Source: Octopus sinensis | Taxonomy: Eukaryota | DNA length: 64,000 nt | Reading direction: 5' to 3' | Assembly (NCBI RefSeq): GCF_006345805.1 | Contig: NC_042997.1 | Coordinates: 211,358,001-211,422,000 of the forward strand | Shown here: piece after piece, positions 2,299-63,000 of the stretch | How positions within the stretch are numbered: the stretch's first letter is position 1 | Layout: each line of letters opens with the position of its first letter | The notes under the pieces: model-generated | Told to the model about the DNA's origin: nothing | The model's input: only the letters and a program-made list of their open reading frames with translations | Database searches by the model: none | Translations under genes and position numbers: made by a program

Positions 2299-2630
2299 TT
2301 TCCTTGAGGAATGGACTGTTGAATGTCTGCAGTCAGTTGAAGAGACGGTGCTGCCAACACGGTAGACTCAATACCTTTTGGTGTCTCATTTAATTTAGGT
2401 TCTTCCAAAGTCGTAACAAGTTTCATTTCTTCACTGTCTCCAAGACATTTATCTTTGGTTTCTATACTTCCCCCCGCAATACAGGCTTTTTTCTTTTCAA
2501 CAGACAATGGCACTGCTGTACTTTCTAAAGATTCTTTCCGCATTTGAAACAATGTCTCTTCTGAGAGTTTTGCAACACTTGCAGCAGCATTTTTCATGTT
2601 GGCATCAACTTTATCTTTTGAAAATGGTTC
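2299..2630 (-). CDS. Exon P (332 nt, phase 0 to 2); the gene probably continues left of the window
   Basis: ttgatag|GAA CCA...GGA AA|gtaagt. Encodes EPFSKDKVDANMKNAAASVAKLSEETLFQMRKESLES...QQSIPQG; 110 open codons in AT-rich context. Confidence 0.72.
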
Positions 2631-7975: not shown

Positions 7976-8094
7976 GACACTTCCTGCAAACATGTTATAC
8001 TTGCATAGACTGACGACACTACCTGTATAAGTTGATGAGAGCTTTCAGATAAAGTAACAACTTGCTCTGTCATGTGACTAGAAATAACACTCAC

Positions 8095-8217
8095 AACACT
8101 GTTTTCTTCCTCGACAACATTGCCGTCTGAATCGGGTTCATATAAGTAGCTCTGACGCAGTTCACCCATAGATCTTGATAACTGAGAATCTCTCACAAAC
8201 AGGAAGCCCTCATTCAC
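8095..8217 (-). CDS. Exon O (123 nt, phase 0 to 0)
   Basis: cttagcag|GTG AAT...GTT|gtgagt. Encodes VNEGFLFVRDSQLSRSMGELRQSYLYEPDSDGNVVEEENSV. Phase-compatible; no homology recognised. Confidence 0.62.
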
Positions 8218-9318: not shown

Positions 9319-11489
9319 TCCAAGGATAATATTAGTTCCAACATACATCTTACATGTTCTGGGATGCATCATTAATAAGACCCTAGGGTTTTTAAGGGGT
9401 TTCAGGTCTTTCAACATCAGGCTCCCCCACCCTGAGTCATCGTGGATCAAGTCCTAGTAAGTGTGTGTGTGTGTGTGTGTGTGTAATTAGCTGCTTTCAG
9501 TTTCCCCCCTTTCAAATCCACTCACAAAACTCTGATCAGCCTGGGGCTATAGAGGAAGACATTTGCCTAAGGGGCCATGCAGTAGGACCTTAGGCAAGTG
9601 TTTATATTTCCGCTCCATGTTCGTAGCCTTTGATTAAGGCAAGAGAGAGATGATTAGGGGACTTTCATGTGCCCTGCTTTCTTTCATCAGTGTGCCACTC
9701 TGTGCCACCCTAAAACATTGTGTCACCTTGGTTGAATTGTATTCATCAAAGAGGATAAAGCATAATGAGATTGATATCAAAGAGAAACATGTTTAATTCG
9801 TTATAATCACATTGCCTAGATGGGATGGTCATGACTGGATCATCTTTGATAACAGATCTACAGGGTCAGGGCTGAACTGAGAGTAAACAACAATAGTAGG
9901 AATAAGGAAGTTTACAATTTATGTGGAGAGGGAGAAAACTTTAATGTTTCCAATTATCATGGATGAGGAGACAAGCCCATAGCTTGGACACTGCATATCA
10001 TCATCATTTAACGTTCGTTTTCCATGCTGGCATGGGTTGGACGGTTTGACTGAGGACTGGCAAGCCAGATGGCTGCATCAGGCTCCAGTCTGATCTGGCA
10101 GTGTTTCTACAGCTGGATGCCTTTCCTAACACTAACCATTCCAAGAGTGTAGTGGGTGCTTTTACGTGCCACTGGCACGAGGGCCAGTCATGCAATACTG
10201 GCGCCAGCCACGCTCAAATGGTGTTTTTTACATGCCACTTGCACAGGAGCCAGTCCAGCGGCACTGGCAACGATGAGCTGGCAGAACCGTTAGCACACCG
10301 GGCGAAATGCGTAGCCGTATTTCGTCTGCCGTTACGCTCTGAGTTCAAATTCCGCCGAGGTCGACTTAGCCTTTCATCCTTTCGGGGTCGATTAAATAAG
10401 TACCAGTTACGGACTGGAGTCGATATAATCAACTTAATCTGTTTGTCTATCCTTGTTTGTCCCCTCTGTGTTTGGCCCCTTGTGGGTAGTAAAGAAATAT
10501 ATATTTTAATTGTAATTTTCAAGGAAATTTCAAAGGAAGCTGCCAACCACATGGACATGTGTTCCATCTTGCTACAGGCTTTGTGTTACAAAGACAAGGC
10601 ACAAAACTCTGCCTCACTTCCCTCAACCTGGCTGACGATGGGCTTCACTGTTAACTAACCCTTTCATTACCATATTTCCGCTGAAACATACAACCTTTGT
10701 TTCAATTAATTTTTTTTTAAATTAAGAATATGATACAATAATTTTGTCCTTATTAGGCTGGTGCTTGGAAAATTTAGATTGTTTTAGAACAAGATGTTTG
10801 AGTCCAAGAAGCAGGGGTGGTCTCAGGTGGGTGCTATAAAAAGGGTTAATAAGGAACAGATTGGTTGGAATTACTAAATGATTGACAATAACGTCTCTCT
10901 GAAATGCATATGTGTTGGTTTCAATTAGTAAGAATAGCTGCAGCTTTGTGGTAAGAAACTTACTTTCCAACTGCAAAGTTCTGGGTTCAGTCCCACTGTA
11001 TGGTACCTTGGGCAAATGTCTTCTACTATAGCCTCTGTCCAACCAAATCCTTGTGAGTGGATTTGGTAGATGGAAACTGAAAGAAGCCCATTGTATGCAT
11101 GTGTGTCCCCCTACATGGCCTTGCTTTTGCTTTTTGAGCCAAAAAATTAACTTAACTTAACTTATATGTTTGTCCCCCACCGCTCCTTCACAACCGGCAG
11201 TGGTGTGTTTATGTCTCCTAACTTAGCAGTTTAGCAAAAAGAACTGACAAAATAGGTACCAGGCTTTAAAAAAATACTGGGGTCAGTTCATTCAACTAAA
11301 AACTCTTCAAGGCAGTGCCCCAGCATGGCCGCAATCTAATGACTGATACAAGTAAAAGATACAAGAATATAAAGGGGGAAAACATAGAAAGAACAACTGA
11401 ACTTCTCCATATTTCATGACACCACCATATATGCCATGTGGTATGATGGAGAATTGAGGGACAGATGTTGAACAACATTACTCATCAAT

Positions 11490-11780: not shown

Positions 11781-12186
11781 TACTCTTTACTCTTTTACTT
11801 GTTTCAGTCATTTGACTGCGGCCATGCTGGAGCACCGCCTTTATTCGAGCAAATCGACCCCGGGACTTATTCTTTGTAAGCCCAGCACTTATTCTATCGG
11901 TCTCTTTTTGCCAAACTGCTAAGTGACAGGAACGTAAACACACCAGCATCGGTTGTTAAGCAATGCTAGGGGGACAAACACAGACACACAAACACATACA
12001 TATATATATATATACATATATACGACAGGCTTCTTCCAGTTTCCGTCTACCAAATCCACTCACAAGGCATTGGTCGGCCCGGGGCTATAGCAGAAGACAC
12101 TTGCCCAAGGTGCCACGCAGTGGGACTGAACCCGGAACCATGTGGTTGGTTAGCAAGCTACTTACCACACAGCCACTCCTGCGCCT
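11780..12186 (-). mobile_element. tRNA-derived SINE with CORE-like ccttgggcaag and (TAAAAGAG)n tail (also 14637-15027, 22030-22607, 10930-11370, 31540-31712, 32355-32520)
   Basis: Multiple near-identical copies: gtggctgtgtggtaag...ggttcagtccc...gtggatttggtagacggaaactg. Confidence 0.9.
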
Positions 12187-12718: not shown

Positions 12719-12812
12719 CTGAGACTCCCCTCCATTATTCTCTTCAACCTCTTCCTCCGTTTCAATTCCAGAACAAACATTGATCAGTTGGTCAATGCAT
12801 TCGGTGACAAAT
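12719..12812 (-). CDS. Exon N, end of the talin R6-like helix followed by an acidic linker (94 nt, phase 2 to 0)
   Basis: gttacag|A TTT GTC...CAG|gtgagt. FVTECIDQLINVCSG matches talin AVTDSINQLITMCTQ, followed by the non-talin IETEEEVEENNGGESQ. Not in the ORF track. Confidence 0.85.
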
Positions 12813-14319
12813 CTGTAACAACAACAACAACAAACTGCAAATCATCATCATCATCATCATTTAACGTCCGCTTTCCATGCTGGCATGGGTTGGACGGTTC
12901 AACTGGGGTCTGGGAAGCCTGAAGGCTGCACCAGGCTCCAGTCTGATCTGGCAGTGTTTCTACAGCTGGATGCCCTTCCTAACGCCAACCACTCCGTGAG
13001 TGTAGCGGGTGCTTTTTACGTGCCACCGGCACAGGGGCCAGGGGAGGCTGGCAAACGGCCACGGTCGGATGGTGCTTTTTACGTGCCACCAGCACGGAGG
13101 CCAGTCGGGCGGCGCTGGCTACGGCCACGTTCGGATGGTTCTCTTACATGCCACCGGCACTGGTATGTGGCAATTATTCAGCAGTCATGATAAAACTCTG
13201 AGTTTTGGATGTTGTGGTGGAAACCCATGCCAGCATCTCTTCAGTTATCGGGCCATTGAAAAAAATTGCTAGGAAAATGACCGTTACAACAAAGGGAAAT
13301 TACTGTGTGATTGACATTATTAAGACAAAAGGGTTATTTGAATGACCACCACATTTTCCCTCTTTGTTTCTCTCTCCTTTCTCCCTCACTTTCCCACTCT
13401 CTTACTCTTCCTTTCTCTCGGACTCTCCCTCACTTTTTCTTACTCTCTATATTTCTCTCTCCCATTTATGAAAGGCAAAAGAACTTGGAGTATGTTGAGA
13501 AAGAAAATATTTTGAAAGATCAATCATAAATATCAGGCAGTGACAACGGAAAGTACCCTTAATTTTTGTACGTGCCACTATCTGAGCAATTAAAAATAAG
13601 GAATAAAAAGATTTCTTTGTTAAATTTAGTACTTATTTGGGGAATTTTTCAACGATTGACCTTGCAAATGAAAGTTCTAAACATGGGCTACATGTAGCTG
13701 TAAATTTCTTTCAGAAAAAATGAAAACTATAAACAATAAAAAATAAAAGGCAAAAATACGTAAAAATGAGAAATTTTTTTCAACTTCAAAAATCTTGCCT
13801 TAATTTTCAAAATTTGGAACCCATTTTCTGCGCTTAAATTACAAATCCTCTTCCACTTTACCGTGTTGAAAATTTACTATCCACAATTTACACATACATC
13901 ATCATCGTTTAACGTCCGCTTTCCAGGCTGGCATGGGTCGGGCGGTTCGACTGGGGTCTGGCAAGCCAGGAGGGTGCACCAGGTTCCAATCTGATCTGAC
14001 AGAGTTTCTACAGCTGGATGCCCTTCCTAACACCAACCACTCCAAGAGTGTAGTGAGTGCTTTTTACGTGCCACTGGCATGGATGGAATCCAGACAAAGC
14101 GGAACAGGTATTGGCCACATTCGGATGGTGCATTTTACATGCTACCAGCACAGGGCTCACACACTACAATACATATAATATATATACGTGCACGTGTATA
14201 TATCATCATCGTCATCATCCTCGTCGTCGTTTAACGTCCACTTTCCATGCTGGCATAGGTCGGACGGTTTGACTGAGGGGTGGTGAGCCAGCAGGCTGCA
14301 CCGGCTCCATACCGATCTG

Positions 14320-14572
14320 GCAATTTCTTTGGACTCCGACTAAACATTTTCCAAAGTTGGTTGATCATCTCTTCCGAAACTCCTGGCTGTCCAGATCCTT
14401 TTTTCCAACACAAACAGCCTTCCTCTTGAAGCTTCTTGTGCCACATCTAAATATACTTCCCTCTTGGTATTTGCTTATGAAATCTAACAAATACACGTTG
14501 CACATTCGCATTTGACGGAGTTTGGGCATGCTTCGATACACAAGACGCCTTTTTTGTTACAGTAAATGGCAT
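14320..14572 (-). mobile_element. Tc1/mariner transposase N-terminal HTH fragment (DUF4817-like), pseudogenised
   Basis: MPFTVTKKASCV...NVQRVFVRF...I*MWHKKLQEEGCLCWKKGSGQPGVSEE...FSRSPKK. Confidence 0.7.
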
Positions 14573-15282
14573 GTCTAATCTTGAAAAGAAAAACCTACAA
14601 AAGATCATATTTTAAAAATGGATTGAATTCTAGACATACTCTTTTACTTGTTTCAGTCATTTGACTGCGGCCATGCTGGAGCACCGCCTTTAGTCGAGCA
14701 AATTGACCCCAGGACTTATTCTTTGTAAGCCCAGTACTTATTCTATTGGTCTCTTTTGCCGAACCGCTAAGTGACGGGGACGTAAACACACCAGCATCGG
14801 TTGTCAAGCAATGCTAAGGAGACAATCACAGACACACAAACATATACATATATATACATATATACAACAGGCTTCTTTCAGTTTCTGTCAACCAAATGCA
14901 CTCACAAGACATTGGTCGGCCCGGGGCTATAGCAGAAGGCACTTGCCCAAGATGCCACGCAGTGGGACTGAACCCGGAACCATGTGGTTGGTTAGCAAGC
15001 TACTTACCACACAGTCACTCCTGCGCCAAATTTGAGACAATTTGGACGAAATGATGTCAAATTTTTGGGGACACATGTATATAGGTGTTAAATGGGCAGT
15101 ATGAGCAATGCTAGTTTATAACTGGTACTTAGTATATTGACCCTGACAGGATGAAAGGTAAAGATGAACTTGGTGGAAACAGAATGCAAAACGTAAAGAC
15201 AGATGGTATGCCACTAAGGTTTTTGGCCCCGAGCGCTAACGATTCTGCCAACTCACTTCCTGAATCATTGTCTTGTGATTGT

Positions 15283-15513
15283 TTAACCCTTTCGTTACCA
15301 ACCTGGCTGAAACCGGCTCTGGCTCTTTAGTAAAAAATGTCTTGTTTTCATAAGTTTTGAATTAAAATCTTCCACCAAACCTTAGTCACAATTTATGTTC
15401 CTGACACTATCTTAATGATGACGAAGTTATTTTACTAAATTCTTTGTTATATCTAAAATTAATTGAAAGAAAAACAGAGCATCTCAAAAGAAATTCGGTA
15501 ACGAAAGGGTTAA
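15283..15513. mobile_element. piggyBac-type MITE with TTAA TSD (also 35955-36182, 59490-59688, 59701-59931; second family 62081-62308)
   Basis: TTAA-CCCTTTCGTTACC...GGTAACGAAAGGG-TTAA terminal inverted repeats. Confidence 0.9.
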
Positions 15514-15579
15514 CATGTGACACATAACGAATTCCACCAAAAGAACAAAATTAACAGTAAAACCAAACTGAATTCCTAC

Positions 15580-15896
15580 CTTGCTGCACCTGAGAGTTTG
15601 TTCTTTGCACTGTGGTCAGTTTGGTCCGTGGAGACAGCATTGGCAACCAGAAGCAAACGGCTCGAGACATCAGAGATGCTGTCCAGTTTCTCCATAATTT
15701 GTGTCTTGGCAGTTAGGTCGGGAGTCATATCAGCAACAAGTCCTACGCTGCTAACAAATTCTTCATAAGCATTCTTGTACAAACCTGATGATTCAATAAG
15801 GTAATCAGACGGTTGGCTGGAACAAGCAATAATTTTACTTGCTGCCATATCCAAGTTCTTTGCTGCCGAGCTCATCCGTCTCAAGGACGACGTTCG
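15580..15896 (-). CDS. Talin rod R6-like exon M within the ANKRD26-like gene (317 nt, phase 0 to 2)
   Basis: tttacag|CGA...GCA AG|gtagga. RMSSAAKNLDMAAS...LDSISDVSSRLLLVANAVSTD...AKNKLSGAAR aligns without gaps to talin-1 RLNEAAAGLNQAAT...LKGISMSSSKLLLAAKALSTD...LKSQLAAAAR (recalled sequence). Confidence 0.85.
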
Positions 15897-16819
15897 CTGT
15901 AAATACTGAAGATTACACACACTTTATCAACACCTTCCATTCATTTCAACATTTAACAAAGCTCTTAAGTAATGGTGGGTGGCAAGGGGTTGTGCTGGTG
16001 GGTGGTGGGGGTGATGGATGATGGGAGGGGGTTGATTGTGGAGACTATTGGGGGTTGGTAGAAGTTTTGGCAGGTGGTGGGGGTTGGTGGAGTTGTTGTG
16101 GTGGTGAGGGTTGATGGTGGTGGGTGATGGTTGTGGTGGTTATGGTGGGAAGAGGATGGAGGGTTGGTGGTGGTTGTGATAGTATGTGGTGGGGGTTGAT
16201 GGGTAGTGGTACCTATTTCATCAGTCCTAATCCATTCCATGGTGCAGTAAATCCATGTTTTAACCTCTTTCACCATTCCACCAATACACAAGGTGATTCA
16301 AAGATCCTTTAACATTGAAATGATATAAATTTCATTCCTTTCTTTCTCACAATTCTATTTCCATATATTTTTAATACTTTCTTCCCTATTTTATCGGAAT
16401 TCCAAGAAACACACAATTCCAAGAAAAAGGGAACGGTTAATGTGGAATCTACAGCTCTTGTACTCTGACTAGAAATTCTCATTTGCACCCAGCATCATAA
16501 ATGCAATAGGATACGTATCTACAGATTTACACCTACAATTACCAGAATTAATATTAAGCATTTAGTGTTTAAACTGGCCGTTTCCGGCCCAAATATTCTA
16601 CATATTTTATATTCAAATGGGCGATACTAGCCTCTCACTCTTAACCTACATTGACATTGAAATCTCAGAGCTATAAGCTAACGCATGATTAATTAAAAAC
16701 AATTTGAGTGAAAATTTATTACATTTAACAGAGTAGTCTGAAAATTAACACTGCGACAGAACTGTTCCCACGATGGGAACAGTTTTACATTTTTCAGATG
16801 CCTTTTAGCTAGGCCGAAA

Positions 16820-19157: not shown

Positions 19158-19640
19158 CATCATCATCATCATCATCATCGTTTAGCGTCCGCTTTCCATG
19201 CTAGCATGGGTTGGACGGGTCAACTGGGGTCTGTGAAGCTGGAAGGCTTCGTCAGGCCCAGTCAGATCTGGCAGTGTTTCTACGGCTGGATGCCCTTCCT
19301 AACGCCAACCACTCCGCGAGTGTAGTGGGTGCTTTTTACATGCCACCTGCACAGGTGCCAGACAGAGCTGGCGAACGGCCACGAACGGAGGGTGCTTTTA
19401 CGTGTCACCGGCACAGGGCCAGGCGATGCTGGCAACGGACACGAACGGATGGTGCTTTTACATGCCACCGACACGGGGCCAGACAGAGCTGGCAACCGGC
19501 CACGAACGGACGGTGCTTTTACGTGTCACCGGCACGGGGGCCAGCCGAGGCTGGCAACGGACACGAACGGATGGTGCTTTTACGTGCCACCGACACGGTT
19601 GCCAGACAGAGCTGGCAAACGGCCACGAGCGGACGGTGCT
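19158..19640 (-). mobile_element. 5'-truncated RTE 3'UTR with five ~61-bp internal tandem units; dominant repeat of the window (e.g. 10000, 12840, 23540, 29640, 38170, 51430, 54075, 63320)
   Basis: (GAT)n tail and conserved gtggttggcgttaggaagggcatccagc. The copy at 29640-30200 is joined to the ORF2 end LTEEMT.DRDLWKYAV. Confidence 0.88.
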
Positions 19641-21584
19641 GGAATACATAGACCTACACACACACACGCATTCATATACGTAAAGAAAAGACGAGAGACC
19701 CATTCTTACCCTAAGAATGAGTTAATATAACGGTAATCTTGGTGGCAGGTATACTTAGTTCAGGTGTCCGGCATAGAGACTGGGTGGTGGCTAAAGGAGT
19801 ATGGGAAAGAAGTGGACAAGCTGTCCTGAAATCCCTGTGAAGTTTAATGAATGCAGTAAGGGTGACAGACAGACAGAGATGGCATGCATTAAGCTCAACT
19901 GTTTGCCAGTTTATATAAATGCTAAACAGACTTTTGAATCCTCCACCACCTTGTTCGCAACAACAATAAATCCTGTTTCATAAAAAAAAGAAATGTATAG
20001 AATCAAAGTTAGTTTTACCATTGTCATTAATTAAACATTTAATTTAATAACAATATATAAATGAATCCAGGCAGAGTGCAAGACTAATTAGAAAGTTCAA
20101 TTATTATAGAAACATGTAAAAAAAAAAACAAAAAAAAAGGCAGCTCATTCAATGTTAGTAAAGTTAAAGTTAATTGTTATGGTTTATTGTTTTCAAAAGA
20201 TTTCGGAAATCTTGCACAATGGAACAACATGCAGAACCCAGAAACACATGGAATAAGGGAAATAAATAATAAAAGAAATGGTTGGTTCTTTTATCTGGGA
20301 AATGGTTTAGTCTCAGACAAAATCTTTGTAAATAATTCTGATGACAGGTGAATGGTAATAAACCAGAATTCAAGGTATGAAAGATAACCAAAGCAAAATT
20401 GTGGGAAAAGGAAAATTAAACTATATTAAACATAAAACTTTCAAAATAAGACATAAAAGTAAAAACAAAAAAAAACATTATGAAGTAAAAAGTCTGGAGG
20501 AAATCATCATCATCATCGTTGAAAATCTGTCTTCTTCCATTGTGGCATTGGTTGGATGATCTGACAGATCTGAAGACTACATCATGCTGCAATACCTGCT
20601 TTGGCATCATTTCTATGGCTGGATGCCTTTCCAAATGCCTGCCACTTTACAGAATGGACCGGGTGCTCTTCTTCATGGCACCAGCACTAGTGAGGTCACC
20701 AGGTAATAAGCAGGACTAAGATCTCTTTTAACTGAGAGGGCCAACAGTAGAAAGTAAGGCAGCTTTAGGGTATGAGATGAGGGATTAAAGTGTGTGAAGA
20801 GGGGTCAGAACAGAACAGGGTTCTTGCTGTAGAGGAGGTACATGGCTAGTGACATCGTAGAAGAGTGGGTGGGAATGTCTAGGAATTGTGCTGGAAAGAG
20901 AGATAAAAATAGGGGTGGTGAGGTGTCAGGTTGGACCCTTAAGGTATGAGGTAAATAGATACATGGTGGGTAGCGGTTGCAGGAGTGCATGGGAGGATGA
21001 GAGATAGGGAACGGGTGAGAAGATAAATATACTGAAGGACAAGTGTTGAAGGATGATAAGCAAGGAAGGTAAGGAAAAGGAGGTGACAACTGTAGAGACT
21101 GAGAAGAAGATAGAGGGGTGGATGAGGGGCAGTGGGTAACCAATGACACACATGAGTTGGGGGAGGAGTAGGAGATAAGTGACAGTGCAGAAAAAGGTGT
21201 GGGAGGGTGAGCAGCGGTAGAATTGTAAGAGTGATATGGTGGACAAGGGAAAGATGAGAGAGGATGAGAGTCAGAGAGAGAGAGAGATAATGGTGATGAT
21301 GATGTGAGGTTGAGGGTGATCAATGTAAAATGCAGGTGGAGATGATCATGGTTCGTTCCCATTAATCTTCCCCCCTCTTACTGTATAGCCATACTGTAAT
21401 ATTATTGCCATAATCTGGTTAGAGCCGGTTCTTGGCAGATAGAATGACTTTCATAATTATTACCAGGAACAATTAAGCTTATTAATAAATTCTCTTGAAA
21501 GTTGTAAAAAAAAAAAGAAGAAGATATGAAATAAAACAATAAAAGCTGAACAAAAGAGAAGAAGCAACCTCTTCTTGGACCAAC

Positions 21585-21949
21585 CTCTTCTTGATCGACT
21601 TTTATTGATGTCATATTGGTTGTTGTGGTGTTAAGCCTGGCACCAGTAACATCTGTTTTTGGTAAATTGGTAGAATTAGCAGGGGAATCCCAATCACTAT
21701 CTTCATCACCACTGTCAGACTCTTTATTCAAAGACATTTGACACAAAAAATCTTTGGAATTATGCTGATTAGATTCACTTTTTGGTTGATTCGACTCATT
21801 TTTATGGTGGTTCGACTCATTCGTATCATAATTCGGTGGCGACGATAAACACGAAGAATCCCAATCATTCTTCGTAATCAAAGGTTTGTGAGAGATTAAA
21901 TCCTTATTTTGTTTACAATCACCATTGCTTTCATCCTTCTCTCCAAAAT
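21585..21949 (-). CDS. ANKRD26: ANKRD26-like exon L, acidic low-complexity (365 nt, phase 1 to 0)
   Basis: ttttatag|AT TTT GGA...GAA GAG|gttggt. Encodes FGEKDESNGD...NDWDSS...NESNHHK NESNQPK SESNQHN...EDSDWDSP...KVDQEE. Donor position is less certain (a duplicate donor lies at 21569). Confidence 0.75.
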
Positions 21950-60199: not shown

Positions 60200-63000
60200 C
60201 AGCGAGAAAGGGATGCAGGGGACATGTCTATATGCAAGGACAACCACAATTTTACTTCGCTTGACATGTTTACTCAAGCACAGCAAACCCCCAGAAGTCT
60301 TGGTACCCTGTCATCCGCTCTGTGAGGCCCAACATCTGAAGATCTTTTCTCAACACTTGATCCCACGTCTTCCTGGGACAATTACTTCCACATGTTCCCT
60401 CCACAATATGAGATTGGGACTTTTTGATGAAGCTGTCTATATTTGATGCCCTGAATACCCAATTTTTCTTTCAAATCACTTACACTCTCTTGTATATACA
60501 CATTGACATTACCCATCCAGCTAACCACACTGGCTTCCTTTCTTTCAAACCTTCACATGTCCTCAATAGTCACAGCCCATGCCTCTTTGCCACGTAGCAT
60601 AGCTGTTCATACAATCTGCCTTTCACTCCAAGAGAGAGGCCCTTTGTTACCAACAGAGGTAGTAGTTCTCTAACCTCTGCCCAGCCTGTTCTCATTCTAG
60701 CACCTATGCTTTCAGAACAACCTCCATCTCTGCTAACCTGGTCACCTAAGTAACAAACTCTCTACCACTTCCGAGGATACACTCTGACATTTGAGGGAGG
60801 CTGTTTTTTGTGTATTCCAGGTGTTTAATGGAGCTGCACATCTGCCACATGTAAGGACTACTTTCTCTGTTAGTCACCCAGTGATACCACTGCACCTGTT
60901 ATGTGCCCATAGCTTGCACTTGGTACACCGTATGGAGTTTCTCCCGACACCTTTTCTACACATCAAGCAGAGGCATCAGCCTGAAGGGATCAGTGATTTG
61001 TCTGCTCTCTTATTTATTAAGGTTTTGGTCTTTGCTAAATTAACTCTAACTCCCTTTGATTTCTGTCCATGCTTCCATACCTGAAATTTCTTCTCTAGTT
61101 CTGGTGGTGATTCAGCAGTAAGAACAAGGTCATTGGCATAGAGGAGCTCCCAAGAACAGCCAGCCTTAAATTCTTCCGTTATAACTTGGAGGATCATGAT
61201 AAACAAGAGGGGGCTGAGAACTGATCCTTGGTGGACTCCTACTTGTACACTTAATTCCTTGCTATGCTCATTGGTGACTTTCACCTTACTGACATCATCC
61301 CTGTACATGGCTTGTACAGTCCTCACCAACCACGCATCTATCCCTAGCTTCCACATTGCCTACCAGATAAGGGAGTGGGCAACCCTGTCAAAAGGTACAG
61401 GGGTTTATTCTTGGCCAAGTACTTCTGCAGTTGTCTCACCAGGAAGATAGCATCAGTGGTGCTTCTCCCTGGCACAAATCCAAACTGCATCTCATCTAGA
61501 CTAACTCACTTCCTAATTGAGTTATGACCCTTTCTGTAACTTTCATCACCTGGTCCAGCAATTTGATACCTTGTAATTATACCTATCTAAGGCATCACCT
61601 TTGCCTTTGCAACAGCTGACTATAATGCTGCTACACCAATCATTGGCTGTGACTCCCTCATAGACAACCTGATCAACTCTATGGGTGACTAAACCGCATC
61701 CTACTCAACCAAATATTTCAAGCATCTCAGCAGTGACCCCTGATAGACCAGGGGGCATTTCCCTGACTTCATATCCTTAATTGTTTTATCAACTTTTCAT
61801 AGTAACACTTTGAACCCTCCTTCTTTGCAGAATCATTAAATACAAGTGAATCACCATCCATGCAAACACACTTGTCTCAAATATAATCATAGAATCAGTT
61901 TATCACCAACAAAAAATCTTTCCAAGGAAAGTTCATTTTTAACCCTGAAGAAGGGACTTGTATGTGCCGGAATATTCGATACATATACGACCAAATATTA
62001 CCAGGTAACTTACTTTTACTTTACGTTACCTCATCTTAAAATCTATTTCTCAGTTAGGGGGTCCATAAATCTCTGACCATTTAACCCTTTAGTGTTCAAA
62101 CCGGTCATACCATCCCAAAATTGTCTTCCTGTTATATGCTCAAACCAGCCAGCTCTGACCTCTCACACCTACCCTACAAAGTCATTCTAAAAATAAACAG
62201 GGACATCATCAAAATCTCAGAGTTACAAGATGCTGTACAATTAATTTTAAACAATGTGATTAAACAGGTTTTACATTTGACAGAGTAATCTGAATGCTAA
62301 AGGGTTAAAGGATTTTTAAGCTTCCAAATCCTTCTTTTCCAGATTGGTCTGCTTCTTGGCATCCTTCTGGCCTAAAGTCACTAATGACTAGTCTCTGCTG
62401 GCGAGTACATTCTTCATGAGGGAAGGTTTTTGCATCTATGAGCATCCATACATCTCGCTGTCTGGTGAGAATGGAATCAGGTTAGTGTAGTCACTTGATT
62501 GATAGGTTATCAGGTGATTGGCTGGCTTCCTGAAGTTGGTGTTGCAGATTAATAGGTTATTTGAATCACAGAACTCCAGTTGCCTTGTTCCCTCTTCGTT
62601 TCAGGAACCAATGCCATGGGACCCATGTACATTATGGAAGATACCCGGCTGCTACCCAACATGTCCATTGAAATCACCAACCACAAAGACGAGGTCATTG
62701 TCATTAGTCTTTGAGGGAGCTTGCAAAAGACTATCATACAAGCAGCCCTTTCGTTCATTTAGCAGCCCTGCTTGAGGGACACAGGCAGAGATAATTGTTG
62801 CTGTAATACTCTGCAAAACTAGCCAAAGCTTAAGTACTCTATTGCACATTCTGACTACCTTAATTACCTTATCCACCCATTTCTCTGCTAGAGGTATGCC
62901 TTCATACCCTACCCCAATGCTGTTAGCTTCCCAGAAGATTCCATACTTATACTTCTTGCCCGTAAGGAACCTGGCTGAAGCTCCCCTTCACTTTACTTCT
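60200..63000 (-). mobile_element. Long degraded RTE LINE ORF2 (APE endonuclease, RT, C-terminus) with nested insertions
   Basis: EKWVDKVI.VVR.C.RVLKL (APE), IKLLDQVMKVTERV, VGVHQGSVLSPLLF...WELLYANDL. Confidence 0.85.

Follow-up and report, generated by a model that had tools for sequence, protein, structure and literature searches.

A probable exonised fragment of talin R6 on the strand of an ankyrin-repeat gene

The R6 domain of the talin rod (talin-1 residues 1206-1357, PDB 2L10) is a bundle of five helices, and its single vinculin-binding site (VBS) is helix 27. Talin rod bundles are known outside talin in TLNRD1, which has been described as R7R8-like (bioRxiv 10.1101/2020.05.19.103606). 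A cytoskeletal module has also been gained in frame by an ankyrin scaffold gene of the ANKRD26 lineage, in the POTE-actin chimeras of primates (PMC7073761). In the POTE case a whole, intronless beta-actin retrogene was gained at the 3' end, through an RNA intermediate. Textbook exon shuffling, by comparison, mostly concerns 1-1 modules that encode extracellular domains.

The locus described here consists of two exons, M and N, on the minus strand of a 64-kb window (the whole stretch of DNA that was analysed, 64,000 nucleotides). They resemble talin R6 in sequence, predicted fold, VBS pattern, and exon-intron structure, and differ from it in lacking helix 23 (leaving four helices), in lying outside any talin, and in carrying an acidic run in place of the R6-R7 linker. 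TLNRD1, with about 22% identity to R7R8, is a gene in its own right, whereas M/N has R6 as its source, spans two exons, sits inside another gene, and contains a talin intron; the match of M+N is to R6 and not to R7R8, with TLNRD1 only a weak neighbor in fold. The POTE-actin chimeras would be a precedent if the host here is truly ANKRD26-like, although M/N is an internal two-exon fragment with an intron and would have been moved as DNA. In common with classical exon shuffling, a 0-0 module stands in a phase-0 host intron with the donor intron position retained; unlike it, the module is a fragment of an intracellular helical bundle that is smaller than its structural domain. From its sequence, M/N is a probable exonised talin fragment.

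Table 1. Features of the window, in positions of the whole stretch (a slash marks a splice junction or a split codon).
Feature	Position	Strand	Remarks
Four ankyrin-repeat exons	59418-59245, 58218-58112, 54574-54480, 49506-49273	minus	Pfam Ank_2 1.8e-25
Acidic linker exons	47641-47520, 38645-38491 (candidate), 27323-27157	minus	
Small connecting exons (candidates)	43212-43152, 37592-37493, 25448-25364	minus	would restore frame
Host exon G (exon L of the earlier note)	21585..21949	minus	acidic, Ser/Asn-rich linker, DWDS motifs
Exon M	15896..15580	minus	317 nt; acceptor ttacag/CGA; donor AAG/gtagga
5' part of VBS-like helix, LSGAA	15582-15596	minus	exon M; AG at 15580-15581 begins Arg codon
M-N intron	15579..12813	minus	2767 nt; phase 2; splits Arg codon AG/A of 'AAR'
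Exon N	12812..12719	minus	94 nt; acceptor ttgttacag/A; donor CAG/gtgagt
3' part of VBS-like helix, (R)FVTECIDQLINVC	12773..12812	minus	exon N
Host exon O	8024..8217	minus	phase-0 start; acceptor 98th percentile; not talin-like
Host exon P	2299..2630	minus	phase-0 start, 2-nt end overhang

In a phmmer search against PDB sequences, residues 6-120 of the M+N translation aligned to talin-1 residues 1240-1354 (R6, 2L10; E=1.8e-14) in a gapless stretch of 115 residues, and the other talin rod bundles gave insignificant stretches only. Pfam assigned M+N to the family Talin_IBS2B (3.2e-6; 27.5 bits, with the threshold at 27). When 1.84 billion representative proteins were scanned in full with HMMER, 37 matched, the nearest of them 43% identical; all that were inspected or scanned for domains proved to be talins or pieces of talin, with the exception of one low-complexity false match (P0004), and the six long matches that were domain-scanned had talin domains only. 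R6 is incomplete in M+N, since of the 158 residues in the 2L10 chain the first to be aligned is residue 41: exon M covers helices 24-26 and the beginning of helix 27, which is completed by codons 1-14 of exon N. An earlier note on this DNA had proposed about 120 amino acids aligning without gaps to talin-1 and corresponding to R6 helices 24-27 with the first helix missing, and had expected talin as the result of a peptide search; the alignments confirm the former, and the searches bear out the latter.

Similarity to talin sets in about five residues past the M acceptor and ends at codon 14 of exon N, and the boundaries are those that had been read from the DNA (a start near the M acceptor, an end mid-exon N, and acidic sequence thereafter). 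Within exon N, identity to a mollusc-like talin is 57% in codons 1-14 and 12% in the last 17 codons, where the acidic run GIETEEEVEENNGGESQ stands in place of talin sequence. The description of exon N as partly talin thus holds for its similarity, which ends mid-exon, but not for the exon itself, which corresponds to the 94-nt talin exon in its full length, the 3' half having been overwritten.

The window is not a talin gene, because only M and N were matched when whole talins were searched against it with tblastn, and likewise when a profile of eight long talins was compared with all six-frame pieces of the window (M at 8e-19, and N), in which talin profile positions 1227-1340 alone were covered. 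A whole talin combines a FERM head, 13 rod bundles, and a C-terminal I/LWEQ domain; neither the tblastn search nor the talin profile found a FERM head, other rod bundles, an I/LWEQ domain, or the talin exon encoding helix 23 in the 64 kb. Since neighboring talin exons have left no trace, M and N have been differentially preserved, and we infer that such neighbors, if ever copied, vanished while M and N stayed intact.

The exon structure points to the route by which the fragment arrived. In a mollusc-like talin gene (L002), the corresponding exons are 338 and 94 nt long and are separated by a phase-2 intron inside an AG/A Arg codon; in the window they are 317 and exactly 94 nt, with phases and split codon identical. 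The intron interrupts the Arg of the AAR motif in both invertebrate talin genes compared (CG/gtcagt in L001, AG/gtaagt...ag/A in L002) and in the window (AG/gtagga...ag/A). The earlier note had described talin as also having a phase-2 intron in this codon, and it is indeed present at the same position and phase in L001 and L002; its inference of capture by DNA-level duplication is supported by the retention of this shared intron. Three of the four splice sites of M/N stand at their ancestral positions, whereas the ancestral M acceptor is gone, and its in-frame replacement is located 21 nt (seven codons) further in than the acceptor of the 338-nt talin exon. Exon M opens in phase 0 and leaves a 2-nt overhang (AG) at its end, and exon N comprises 1 nt plus 31 codons and ends in phase 0, so that M+N amounts to 137 codons (411 nt) with no stops. 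The retained intron position and phase, the exon lengths, and the 0-0 symmetry together support capture at the DNA level, and from this sequence evidence M/N is very probably derived from talin by that route.

We propose that a segment of DNA spanning two adjacent exons of the talin gene of the host lineage itself, and the intron that separates them, was duplicated, and that the copy was inserted into a phase-0 intron of a gene whose product begins with ankyrin repeats and continues into an acidic, serine-rich linker. The first exon would then have lost its original acceptor and gained an in-frame one 21 nt downstream, and the former R6-R7 linker rewritten into an acidic stretch resembling the host linker. 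The resulting cassette would encode R6 minus helix 23, a four-helix bundle with the VBS pattern kept in its last helix. Because M/N is a 0-0 unit of 137 codons, splicing it in would leave the host reading frame unbroken. We regard this capture of two talin exons into a phase-0 intron of an ankyrin gene as somewhat probable as an overall explanation, and inclusion of M/N in the mRNA of the ankyrin gene is, on balance, predicted from the sequence.

The proposed host is represented upstream on the same strand by ankyrin-repeat exons and acidic linker exons, as the earlier note had reported. The ankyrin exons chain in phase (0/0, 2+1, 1+2), and an N-terminal ankyrin block followed by acidic Ser-rich exons is the layout of the ANKRD26 family, but is generic rather than specific to ANKRD26. 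The label 'ANKRD26-like' is tentative: with the ankyrin part as query, a word-indexed search (247 aa) returned generic ankyrin proteins at no more than 42% identity and none named ANKRD26, comparison with the PDB gave generic ankyrin proteins only, and the end of the gene where the C-terminal coiled coil of the family (CCDC144C-like, DUF3496 region) would be encoded lies outside the window. The literature retrieved for ANKRD26 with talin consisted of platelet and adhesion papers only, in which each is mentioned separately. A Pfam scan found no domains in linker exons G, O, P, and F.

On both sides, M and N were found to be in phase with their neighbors, as had been claimed: exon G ends and exon O begins in phase 0, so that the 0-0 cassette fits between them. 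The donor of exon G (GAG/gttggt) is modest, at the 95th percentile. Exon O has two in-phase candidate donors (ending at 8095 or 8024), and beyond exon P the host gene leaves the window at its low end. Competing well-scored 0-0 exons number none between G and M, and one, of 24 nt, between N and O.

A separate transcription unit, in which a truncated talin-derived gene lies within the ankyrin gene or downstream of it and perhaps includes G, O, and P, would account for the 33 kb between the ankyrin exons and M. The acidic linker exons and exon G each have a 2-nt start overhang and a phase-0 end, and with first-choice splice sites the upstream linker exons fall out of phase, an in-phase chain requiring the three small candidate exons; the linker-exon chain is a heuristic model only. 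Continuity of the 'ANKRD26-like' gene is suggested only by strand, order, and a shared acidic, DWDS-type composition. Nevertheless, we consider a separate unit quite improbable: exon M opens at an acceptor and has no start context of its own, the linker exons on either side of M/N resemble the ankyrin-adjacent exons in composition and motifs, the three small candidates are well scored and give a continuous frame, and the window holds no further talin-like exon from which a talin-like gene could be built.

A more serious alternative to splicing of M/N into the ankyrin gene, although still a doubtful one, is that M/N is a silent relic, a scrap of talin in a long intron that is left unspliced and in which a stop or frameshift has yet to arise. 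Database searches found no annotated or assembled protein with the M/N junctions. Neither the word-indexed search, nor the scan of 1.84 billion representatives, nor a profile search found a protein joining ankyrin repeats to the M+N module or an orthologue of the locus; with M+N as the query, the word-indexed search gave no matches, and the profile search gave short talin exon fragments only. The loss of the ancestral M acceptor, together with the loss of talin likeness in the 3' half of exon N, is also what a decaying fragment would show. Using simple splice scores, expressed as percentiles among all AG or GT dinucleotides on the minus strand of the window, the replacement M acceptor is moderate (90th percentile). 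By the same measure the three ancestral sites, which remain intact, are strong (M donor 99th, N acceptor 98th, and N donor 100th percentile), and the last of these is a perfect CAG/GTGAGT. The hydrophobic pattern and VBS positions that are retained, the differential preservation of M and N, and a fold confidently predicted even from the single sequence (see below) likewise argue against a relic.

The claim in the earlier note that the intact frame implies purifying selection proved weaker than stated. In neutral simulations with substitutions only, exon M remained free of stops in 10-16% of cases, which a relic could well have done. The observed M+N profile score was reached by 2.3% of neutrally decayed copies at 45% identity to the ancestor and by 65% at 55%, and this comparison thus depends on the ancestor assumed. 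Indel:substitution ratios in neutral DNA are roughly 1:5 to 1:20, and seven or more indels would be expected over 411 nt at about 50% nucleotide identity; M/N has no indels and no stops over this length and identity, and its alignment is gapless over the 115 residues, which speaks against a relic and suggests selection on M/N.

If the cassette is translated, it would encode a compact bundle. With a talin alignment, AlphaFold predicted four helices at a pLDDT of about 90, a model that is partly circular given the alignment on which it was built; without an alignment, the single sequence also gave four helices, at a mean pLDDT of 75.7 and a pTM of 0.62. The top Foldseek match of the predicted bundle was talin R6 itself (2L10, rmsd 1.0 Å over 119 columns), and the list also included the FAT domains of p130Cas and Pyk2/FAK with paxillin LD peptides and the four-helix bundle of TLNRD1 (6XZ3, 6XZ4); these four-helix LD-motif binders and TLNRD1 had target-normalised TM values of 0.75-0.80. 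A fifth helix contributed by the flanking exons was considered and rejected, as the flanks had pLDDT below 50-65 and were undocked in a composite AlphaFold model.

The VBS-type helix is the most conserved part of M+N. Joined across the intron it reads LSGAARFVTECIDQLINVC, which matches the VBS consensus used here (LxxAAxxVAxxVxxLIxxA) wherever talin-1 helix 27 does: L, AA, V, and LI are kept, and the substitutions T, I, and C are identical to those of talin-1 LAAAARAVTDSINQLITMC. At the level of sequence, then, the counterpart of the helix-27 VBS that the earlier note had recognized is present with its consensus positions retained. We infer that the module most likely serves as a small helical docking unit in a scaffold protein, for which two options may be considered. 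In the first, the vinculin head would dock through the helix-27-like helix; from the sequence pattern, M+N is tentatively a putative vinculin binder. In the second, an amphipathic helix would be taken up in the groove emptied by the missing helix 23.

Under the second option, an expressed cassette would serve as an adaptor that binds a helix, and would not function as an exposed vinculin site. LD-motif-like amphipathic helices are taken up by talin R8 and by FAT domains, and the loss of helix 23 would leave a hydrophobic groove into which such a helix could fit, in cis or in trans; the LD-motif-binding bundles among the Foldseek matches are consistent with this. Furthermore, the confident prediction of a compact bundle speaks against a VBS that is constitutively unfolded and exposed. 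No helix was identified as a candidate partner, however, the flanking exons do not dock onto the bundle, and the VBS-type helix is the part best conserved, so that we consider an adaptor function unlikely. It is less likely again that an ankyrin scaffold (possibly an ANKRD26 orthologue) domesticated a truncated R6 in the mollusc lineage, with its vinculin helix available without force. If this were true, vinculin or another helix-binding partner would be recruited to the location of the scaffold independently of force, and the module would be the first derived from talin R6 to function outside talin. The easier exposure of the vinculin site and the link from a centriolar scaffold to adhesion that the earlier note had suggested are speculative.

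The significance of M/N depends on expression. If expressed, it would be an unusually clean and datable example of intracellular exon shuffling, in which the mechanism of capture can be read directly from the DNA because the donor intron and exon lengths are preserved. It would also be a natural experiment in talin mechanobiology, in that an R6 without helix 23, off the force-bearing chain, would probe whether the cryptic vinculin-binding helix becomes constitutively available. If not expressed, M/N is an ordinary gene fragment in an intron.

The surroundings of M/N are rich in repeats, with several SINE-like and other repeat copies in the M-N intron and abundant copies in both flanks. A 2.85-kb tandem duplication around exon N was rejected, as the signal consists of two repeat-element pairs at that offset with unrelated sequence between them. 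Such repeats, including the two pairs, could in principle have mis-joined a talin fragment into the contig during assembly. We regard this as very improbable: at only about 45% identity to the nearest talin the fragment has diverged far too much for a stray part of the real talin gene, the acidic tail of exon N is host-like, and the phases fit the host exons.

With regard to ancestry, M+N is closest to mollusc-type talins. Its identity is 45% to the nearest talin (L002) and 29-34% to the four talins furthest from it in the comparison, a vertebrate-like talin among them, and its divergence from mollusc-type talin is about double that of vertebrate talin. Alternatively, M/N may have been copied recently from a talin paralogue of the host that had itself already diverged. 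M+N also shares the motif QLINVC with an oyster talin-2-like protein.

The minus-strand exons M and N lie exactly where the earlier note had placed them, and together encode 137 stop-free codons, RTSSLRRMSS...LSGAAR/FVTECIDQLINVCSGIETEEEVEENNGGESQ (slashes denote splice boundaries). By sequence comparison, the joined peptide (M+N) is talin R6 sequence: residues 6-120 align without gaps to residues 1240-1354 of talin-1 (R6, PDB entry 2L10; E=1.8e-14 against all PDB sequences). Within the 158-residue 2L10 chain the match starts only at residue 41, and the first of the five R6 helices (helix 23) is therefore absent from M+N. In Pfam, Talin_IBS2B is matched barely over the cut-off. When 1.84 billion representative proteins were scanned with HMMER without filtering, 37 matched, the nearest with 43% identity to M+N; every one inspected or domain-scanned is a talin or a talin fragment the size of an exon, with the exception of a single low-complexity false match. 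This protein (P0004; 6382 aa, Pro/Gly/Thr-rich, 2e-10 against M+N) was rejected as a talin relative, its score arising from repeat bias and a short "TTECIEQWIKVC" stretch. That the window itself represents a talin gene is ruled out, as tblastn with seven talin proteins or fragments (three of at least 2,000 aa; permissive settings) matched nothing beyond exon M and the opening 14-15 codons of exon N, and a profile HMM of eight long talins, searched against all six-frame open pieces of the window, gave the same outcome (M at 8e-19, then N).

Coordinates of exons and repeats in the window
Feature	Position	Strand	Remarks
Retrotransposon fragment (non-LTR)	60979-61359; neighboring ORFs 61347-61505, 62655-62987	minus	First ORF: Pfam RVT_1 (reverse transcriptase), 1.8e-11
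Ankyrin-repeat exons (four)	59418-59245, 58218-58112, 54574-54480, 49506-49273	minus	Chain in phase; Pfam Ank_2, 1.8e-25
Acidic, serine-rich linker exons	47641-47520, 38645-38491, 27323-27157, 21949-21585 (G)	minus	After ankyrin exons; several with DWDS-type (D/S-W-D-S) motifs
Small well-scored candidate exons	43212-43152, 37592-37493, 25448-25364	minus	Phase-0 start, 1-nt end overhang
Exon M	15896-15580	minus	317 nt; acceptor ttacag/CGA, phase-0 start; donor AAG/gtagga, 2-base overhang AG
Exon N	12812-12719	minus	94 nt; acceptor ttgttacag/A; donor CAG/gtgagt, phase-0 end
Exon O	8217-8095 or 8217-8024	minus	Downstream of N; in-phase candidate donors of similar strength, GTT/gtgagt (8095) and CAG/gtagtg (8024)
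Exon P	2630-2299	minus	Downstream of N; gene then leaves window
SINE-like copies	9989-10272, 12842-13160, 13890-14154, 14212-14322, 19163-19351		
Tandem 61-nt units	19354-19662		

The origin of the two exons was examined by comparison with talin genes, including L002, a 220-kb invertebrate contig with ∼15 talin exons and mollusc-like sequence. The L002 counterpart of M (338 nt; phase-0 start) ends GCC AG/gtaagt; it is followed by an intron of 2927 nt (2767 nt between M and N) and an exon of exactly 94 nt (ag/A GGA GTA ... ATA CAG/gtaaag) that ends in phase 0. The Arg codon is split alike (AG/A), the phases are equal, and the second exon ends CAG/gt in both. Because the second-exon length, phases and split codon match, M and N represent two whole consecutive talin exons plus their intron, which supports the earlier proposal of capture at the DNA rather than the RNA level. 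The one boundary that has shifted is the 5′ end of exon M, whose ancestral acceptor 21 nt further upstream was lost; an in-frame acceptor is now found at 15896. A second in-frame acceptor (cttcag/TATTTACAG/CGA) occurs 9 nt upstream, at 15905 on the minus strand; it is the weaker of the two (73rd percentile; 15896 is at the 90th), and its use would add YLQ to the peptide. The mid-N halt in talin similarity, noted earlier, is not the end of the talin exon; it is where the 3′ half of N (17 codons, 12% identity) has been rewritten into an acidic stretch.

In a second talin gene fragment, L001, the homologous exon ends GCC CG/gtcagt, a phase-2 intron within the Arg codon of "AAR." Many exon-sized database talin fragments, lophotrochozoan-like and some vertebrate-like (P0097, P0100), stop directly after AAR, whereas arthropod-like fragments (e.g., P0007) read through this position, which indicates an old intron that some lineages have lost. 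These fragments, which come from public assemblies, also include P0002, P0010, P0013, P0016, and others. In several of the fragments a further break follows 31 residues on, after "..IE" or "..IQ," with Val (GTN) read-through; this break corresponds to the 3′ end of the 94-nt exon. M+N is 45% identical to L002 and 38% to P0005, both mollusc-type talins (76% identical to each other), and 29-34% identical to the four remotest talins in the comparison (one vertebrate-like); QLINVC is common to M+N and an oyster "talin-2-like" protein. Since mollusc-type talins are nearest, the copy appears to derive from the talin of the host lineage itself, with strong divergence since. Overall, we regard a talin origin with DNA-level capture of M and N as very probable.

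Purifying selection had been deduced from the intact reading frame. The frame is indeed intact, but the deduction is less secure than was implied, given that 10-16% of runs were stop-free in a neutral simulation in which a talin exon decayed, by substitutions only, to 43-50% amino-acid identity. M+N scores 71 bits with a talin R6 profile from which it had been left out; stop-free neutral decays of L002 to 45% identity score 50±10 bits (2.3% reach 71), and decays to 55% score 74 bits, such that the outcome hinges on the assumed identity to the true ancestor. Identity to L002 at codon positions 1, 2, and 3 (57, 70, and 30%) is a pattern suggestive of selection at most. A stronger, albeit indirect, case than the simulations comes from the lack of indels, the kept splice sites and the vanished neighboring exons. 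At neutral rates several indels would be expected over 411 nt at such divergence, and M+N has none at ∼50% nucleotide identity. Three ancestral splice sites are intact and strong, and the replacement acceptor of M is in frame. Neighboring talin exons, which sit within ∼1 kb in L002, left no trace in the window in the six-frame talin profile search.

Ankyrin-repeat exons lie upstream of M and N on the same strand, followed by linker exons of which G lies nearest M. G ends, M starts, N ends, and O starts in phase 0; this makes the 411-nt M+N a phase-symmetric (0-0) cassette within a host intron of phase 0, as exon shuffling classically requires. Between G and M there is no competing 0-0 exon with a good score; between N and O there is a single one, of 24 nt. 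In its longer form, exon O gains a predicted helix, VVSVISSHMTEQVVTLSESSHQLIQ. Each of the four linker exons has a 2-nt overhang at its start and a phase-0 end, so none can chain directly to another; either the three small candidate exons would restore the linker frame, according to a heuristic model, or the linker exons may serve as mutually alternative exons after the last ankyrin exon. Inclusion of M+N in the mRNA of the ankyrin gene is predicted with odds slightly better than even. No protein with the M/N junctions is present in the protein collections, which return no self-hit and apparently lack this genome, so this absence says nothing about expression. An orthologous locus was likewise not found in the protein collections searched.

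The proposed label "ANKRD26-like" is at best provisional, as the gene yields only generic ankyrin matches and the diagnostic coiled-coil end would lie beyond the window. With a 247-aa stretch of the ankyrin region as query, generic ankyrin proteins alone were retrieved (at most 42% identity), PDB and Pfam searches of this region were similarly generic, and the linker exons have no family match in Pfam. ANKRD26 recruits PIDD1 to distal appendages (PMC7883297); carrying this role over to the window gene is unsupported.

The tail of exon G, M+N, exon O, and the first part of exon P were modeled as one chain in AlphaFold with a talin alignment supplied. This composite model has four helices (pLDDT ∼90) precisely over the talin-like part, flanks with pLDDT below 50-65, and no fifth helix docking on the bundle. 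Its top Foldseek match is 2L10 (rmsd 1.0 Å, 119 columns). Modeled without an alignment, the 137-residue peptide also forms four long helices (mean pLDDT 75.7, pTM 0.62). The single vinculin-binding site (VBS) of R6 is helix 27 (bioRxiv 10.1101/2021.04.26.441533), and the VBS consensus is LxxAAxxVAxxVxxLIxxA (PMC6001692, PMC2242828). The window's LSGAARFVTECIDQLINVC keeps the L, AA, V, and LI of this consensus, with T, I, and C as in talin-1 helix 27; conservation in M+N is highest in this VBS-like helix and in the SS(K/R)LLL stretch before it. Any functional role of M+N is one that we infer, and vinculin binding is a tentative prediction that we consider rather unlikely to hold. The suggestion that a four-helix form exposes the VBS more readily is speculation, and the models instead favor a compact bundle. 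Fold neighbors from Foldseek include four-helix LD-motif binders (FAT domains, TLNRD1), so M+N might alternatively take a helix into the groove vacated by helix 23.

Events of this kind are already known. TLNRD1 is a talin rod bundle outside talin (bioRxiv 10.1101/2020.05.19.103606), and the ANKRD26-derived POTE family captured an actin retrogene (PMC7073761). However, TLNRD1 is R7R8-like and POTE acquired its cytoskeletal sequence as a retrogene, whereas what sets the window case apart from both is that two internal exons, encoding less than the full R6 domain, were captured together with their intron.

The window DNA is eukaryotic, with long, repeat-rich introns. Two unrelated repeat pairs at a ∼2.85-kb offset, 11788-12185 with 14637-15027 (92% identical) and 9997-10272 with 12850-13123 (83% identical), gave the appearance of exon N lying within a tandem duplication; the intervening sequence is not homologous, and we read the pairs as coincidental copies of repeat elements. 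The retrotransposon fragment, upstream of the first ankyrin exon in the window, presumably belongs to an intron of the host gene or to its flank. Copies of the SINE-like family open with TTTAACGTCCGCTTTCCATGCTGGCATGGGT, preceded by a (TCA)n tract. The intron between M and N contains three of them, and an array of ∼61-nt sub-repeats is carried by one copy. Translated "ORFs" of this family recur throughout the window.
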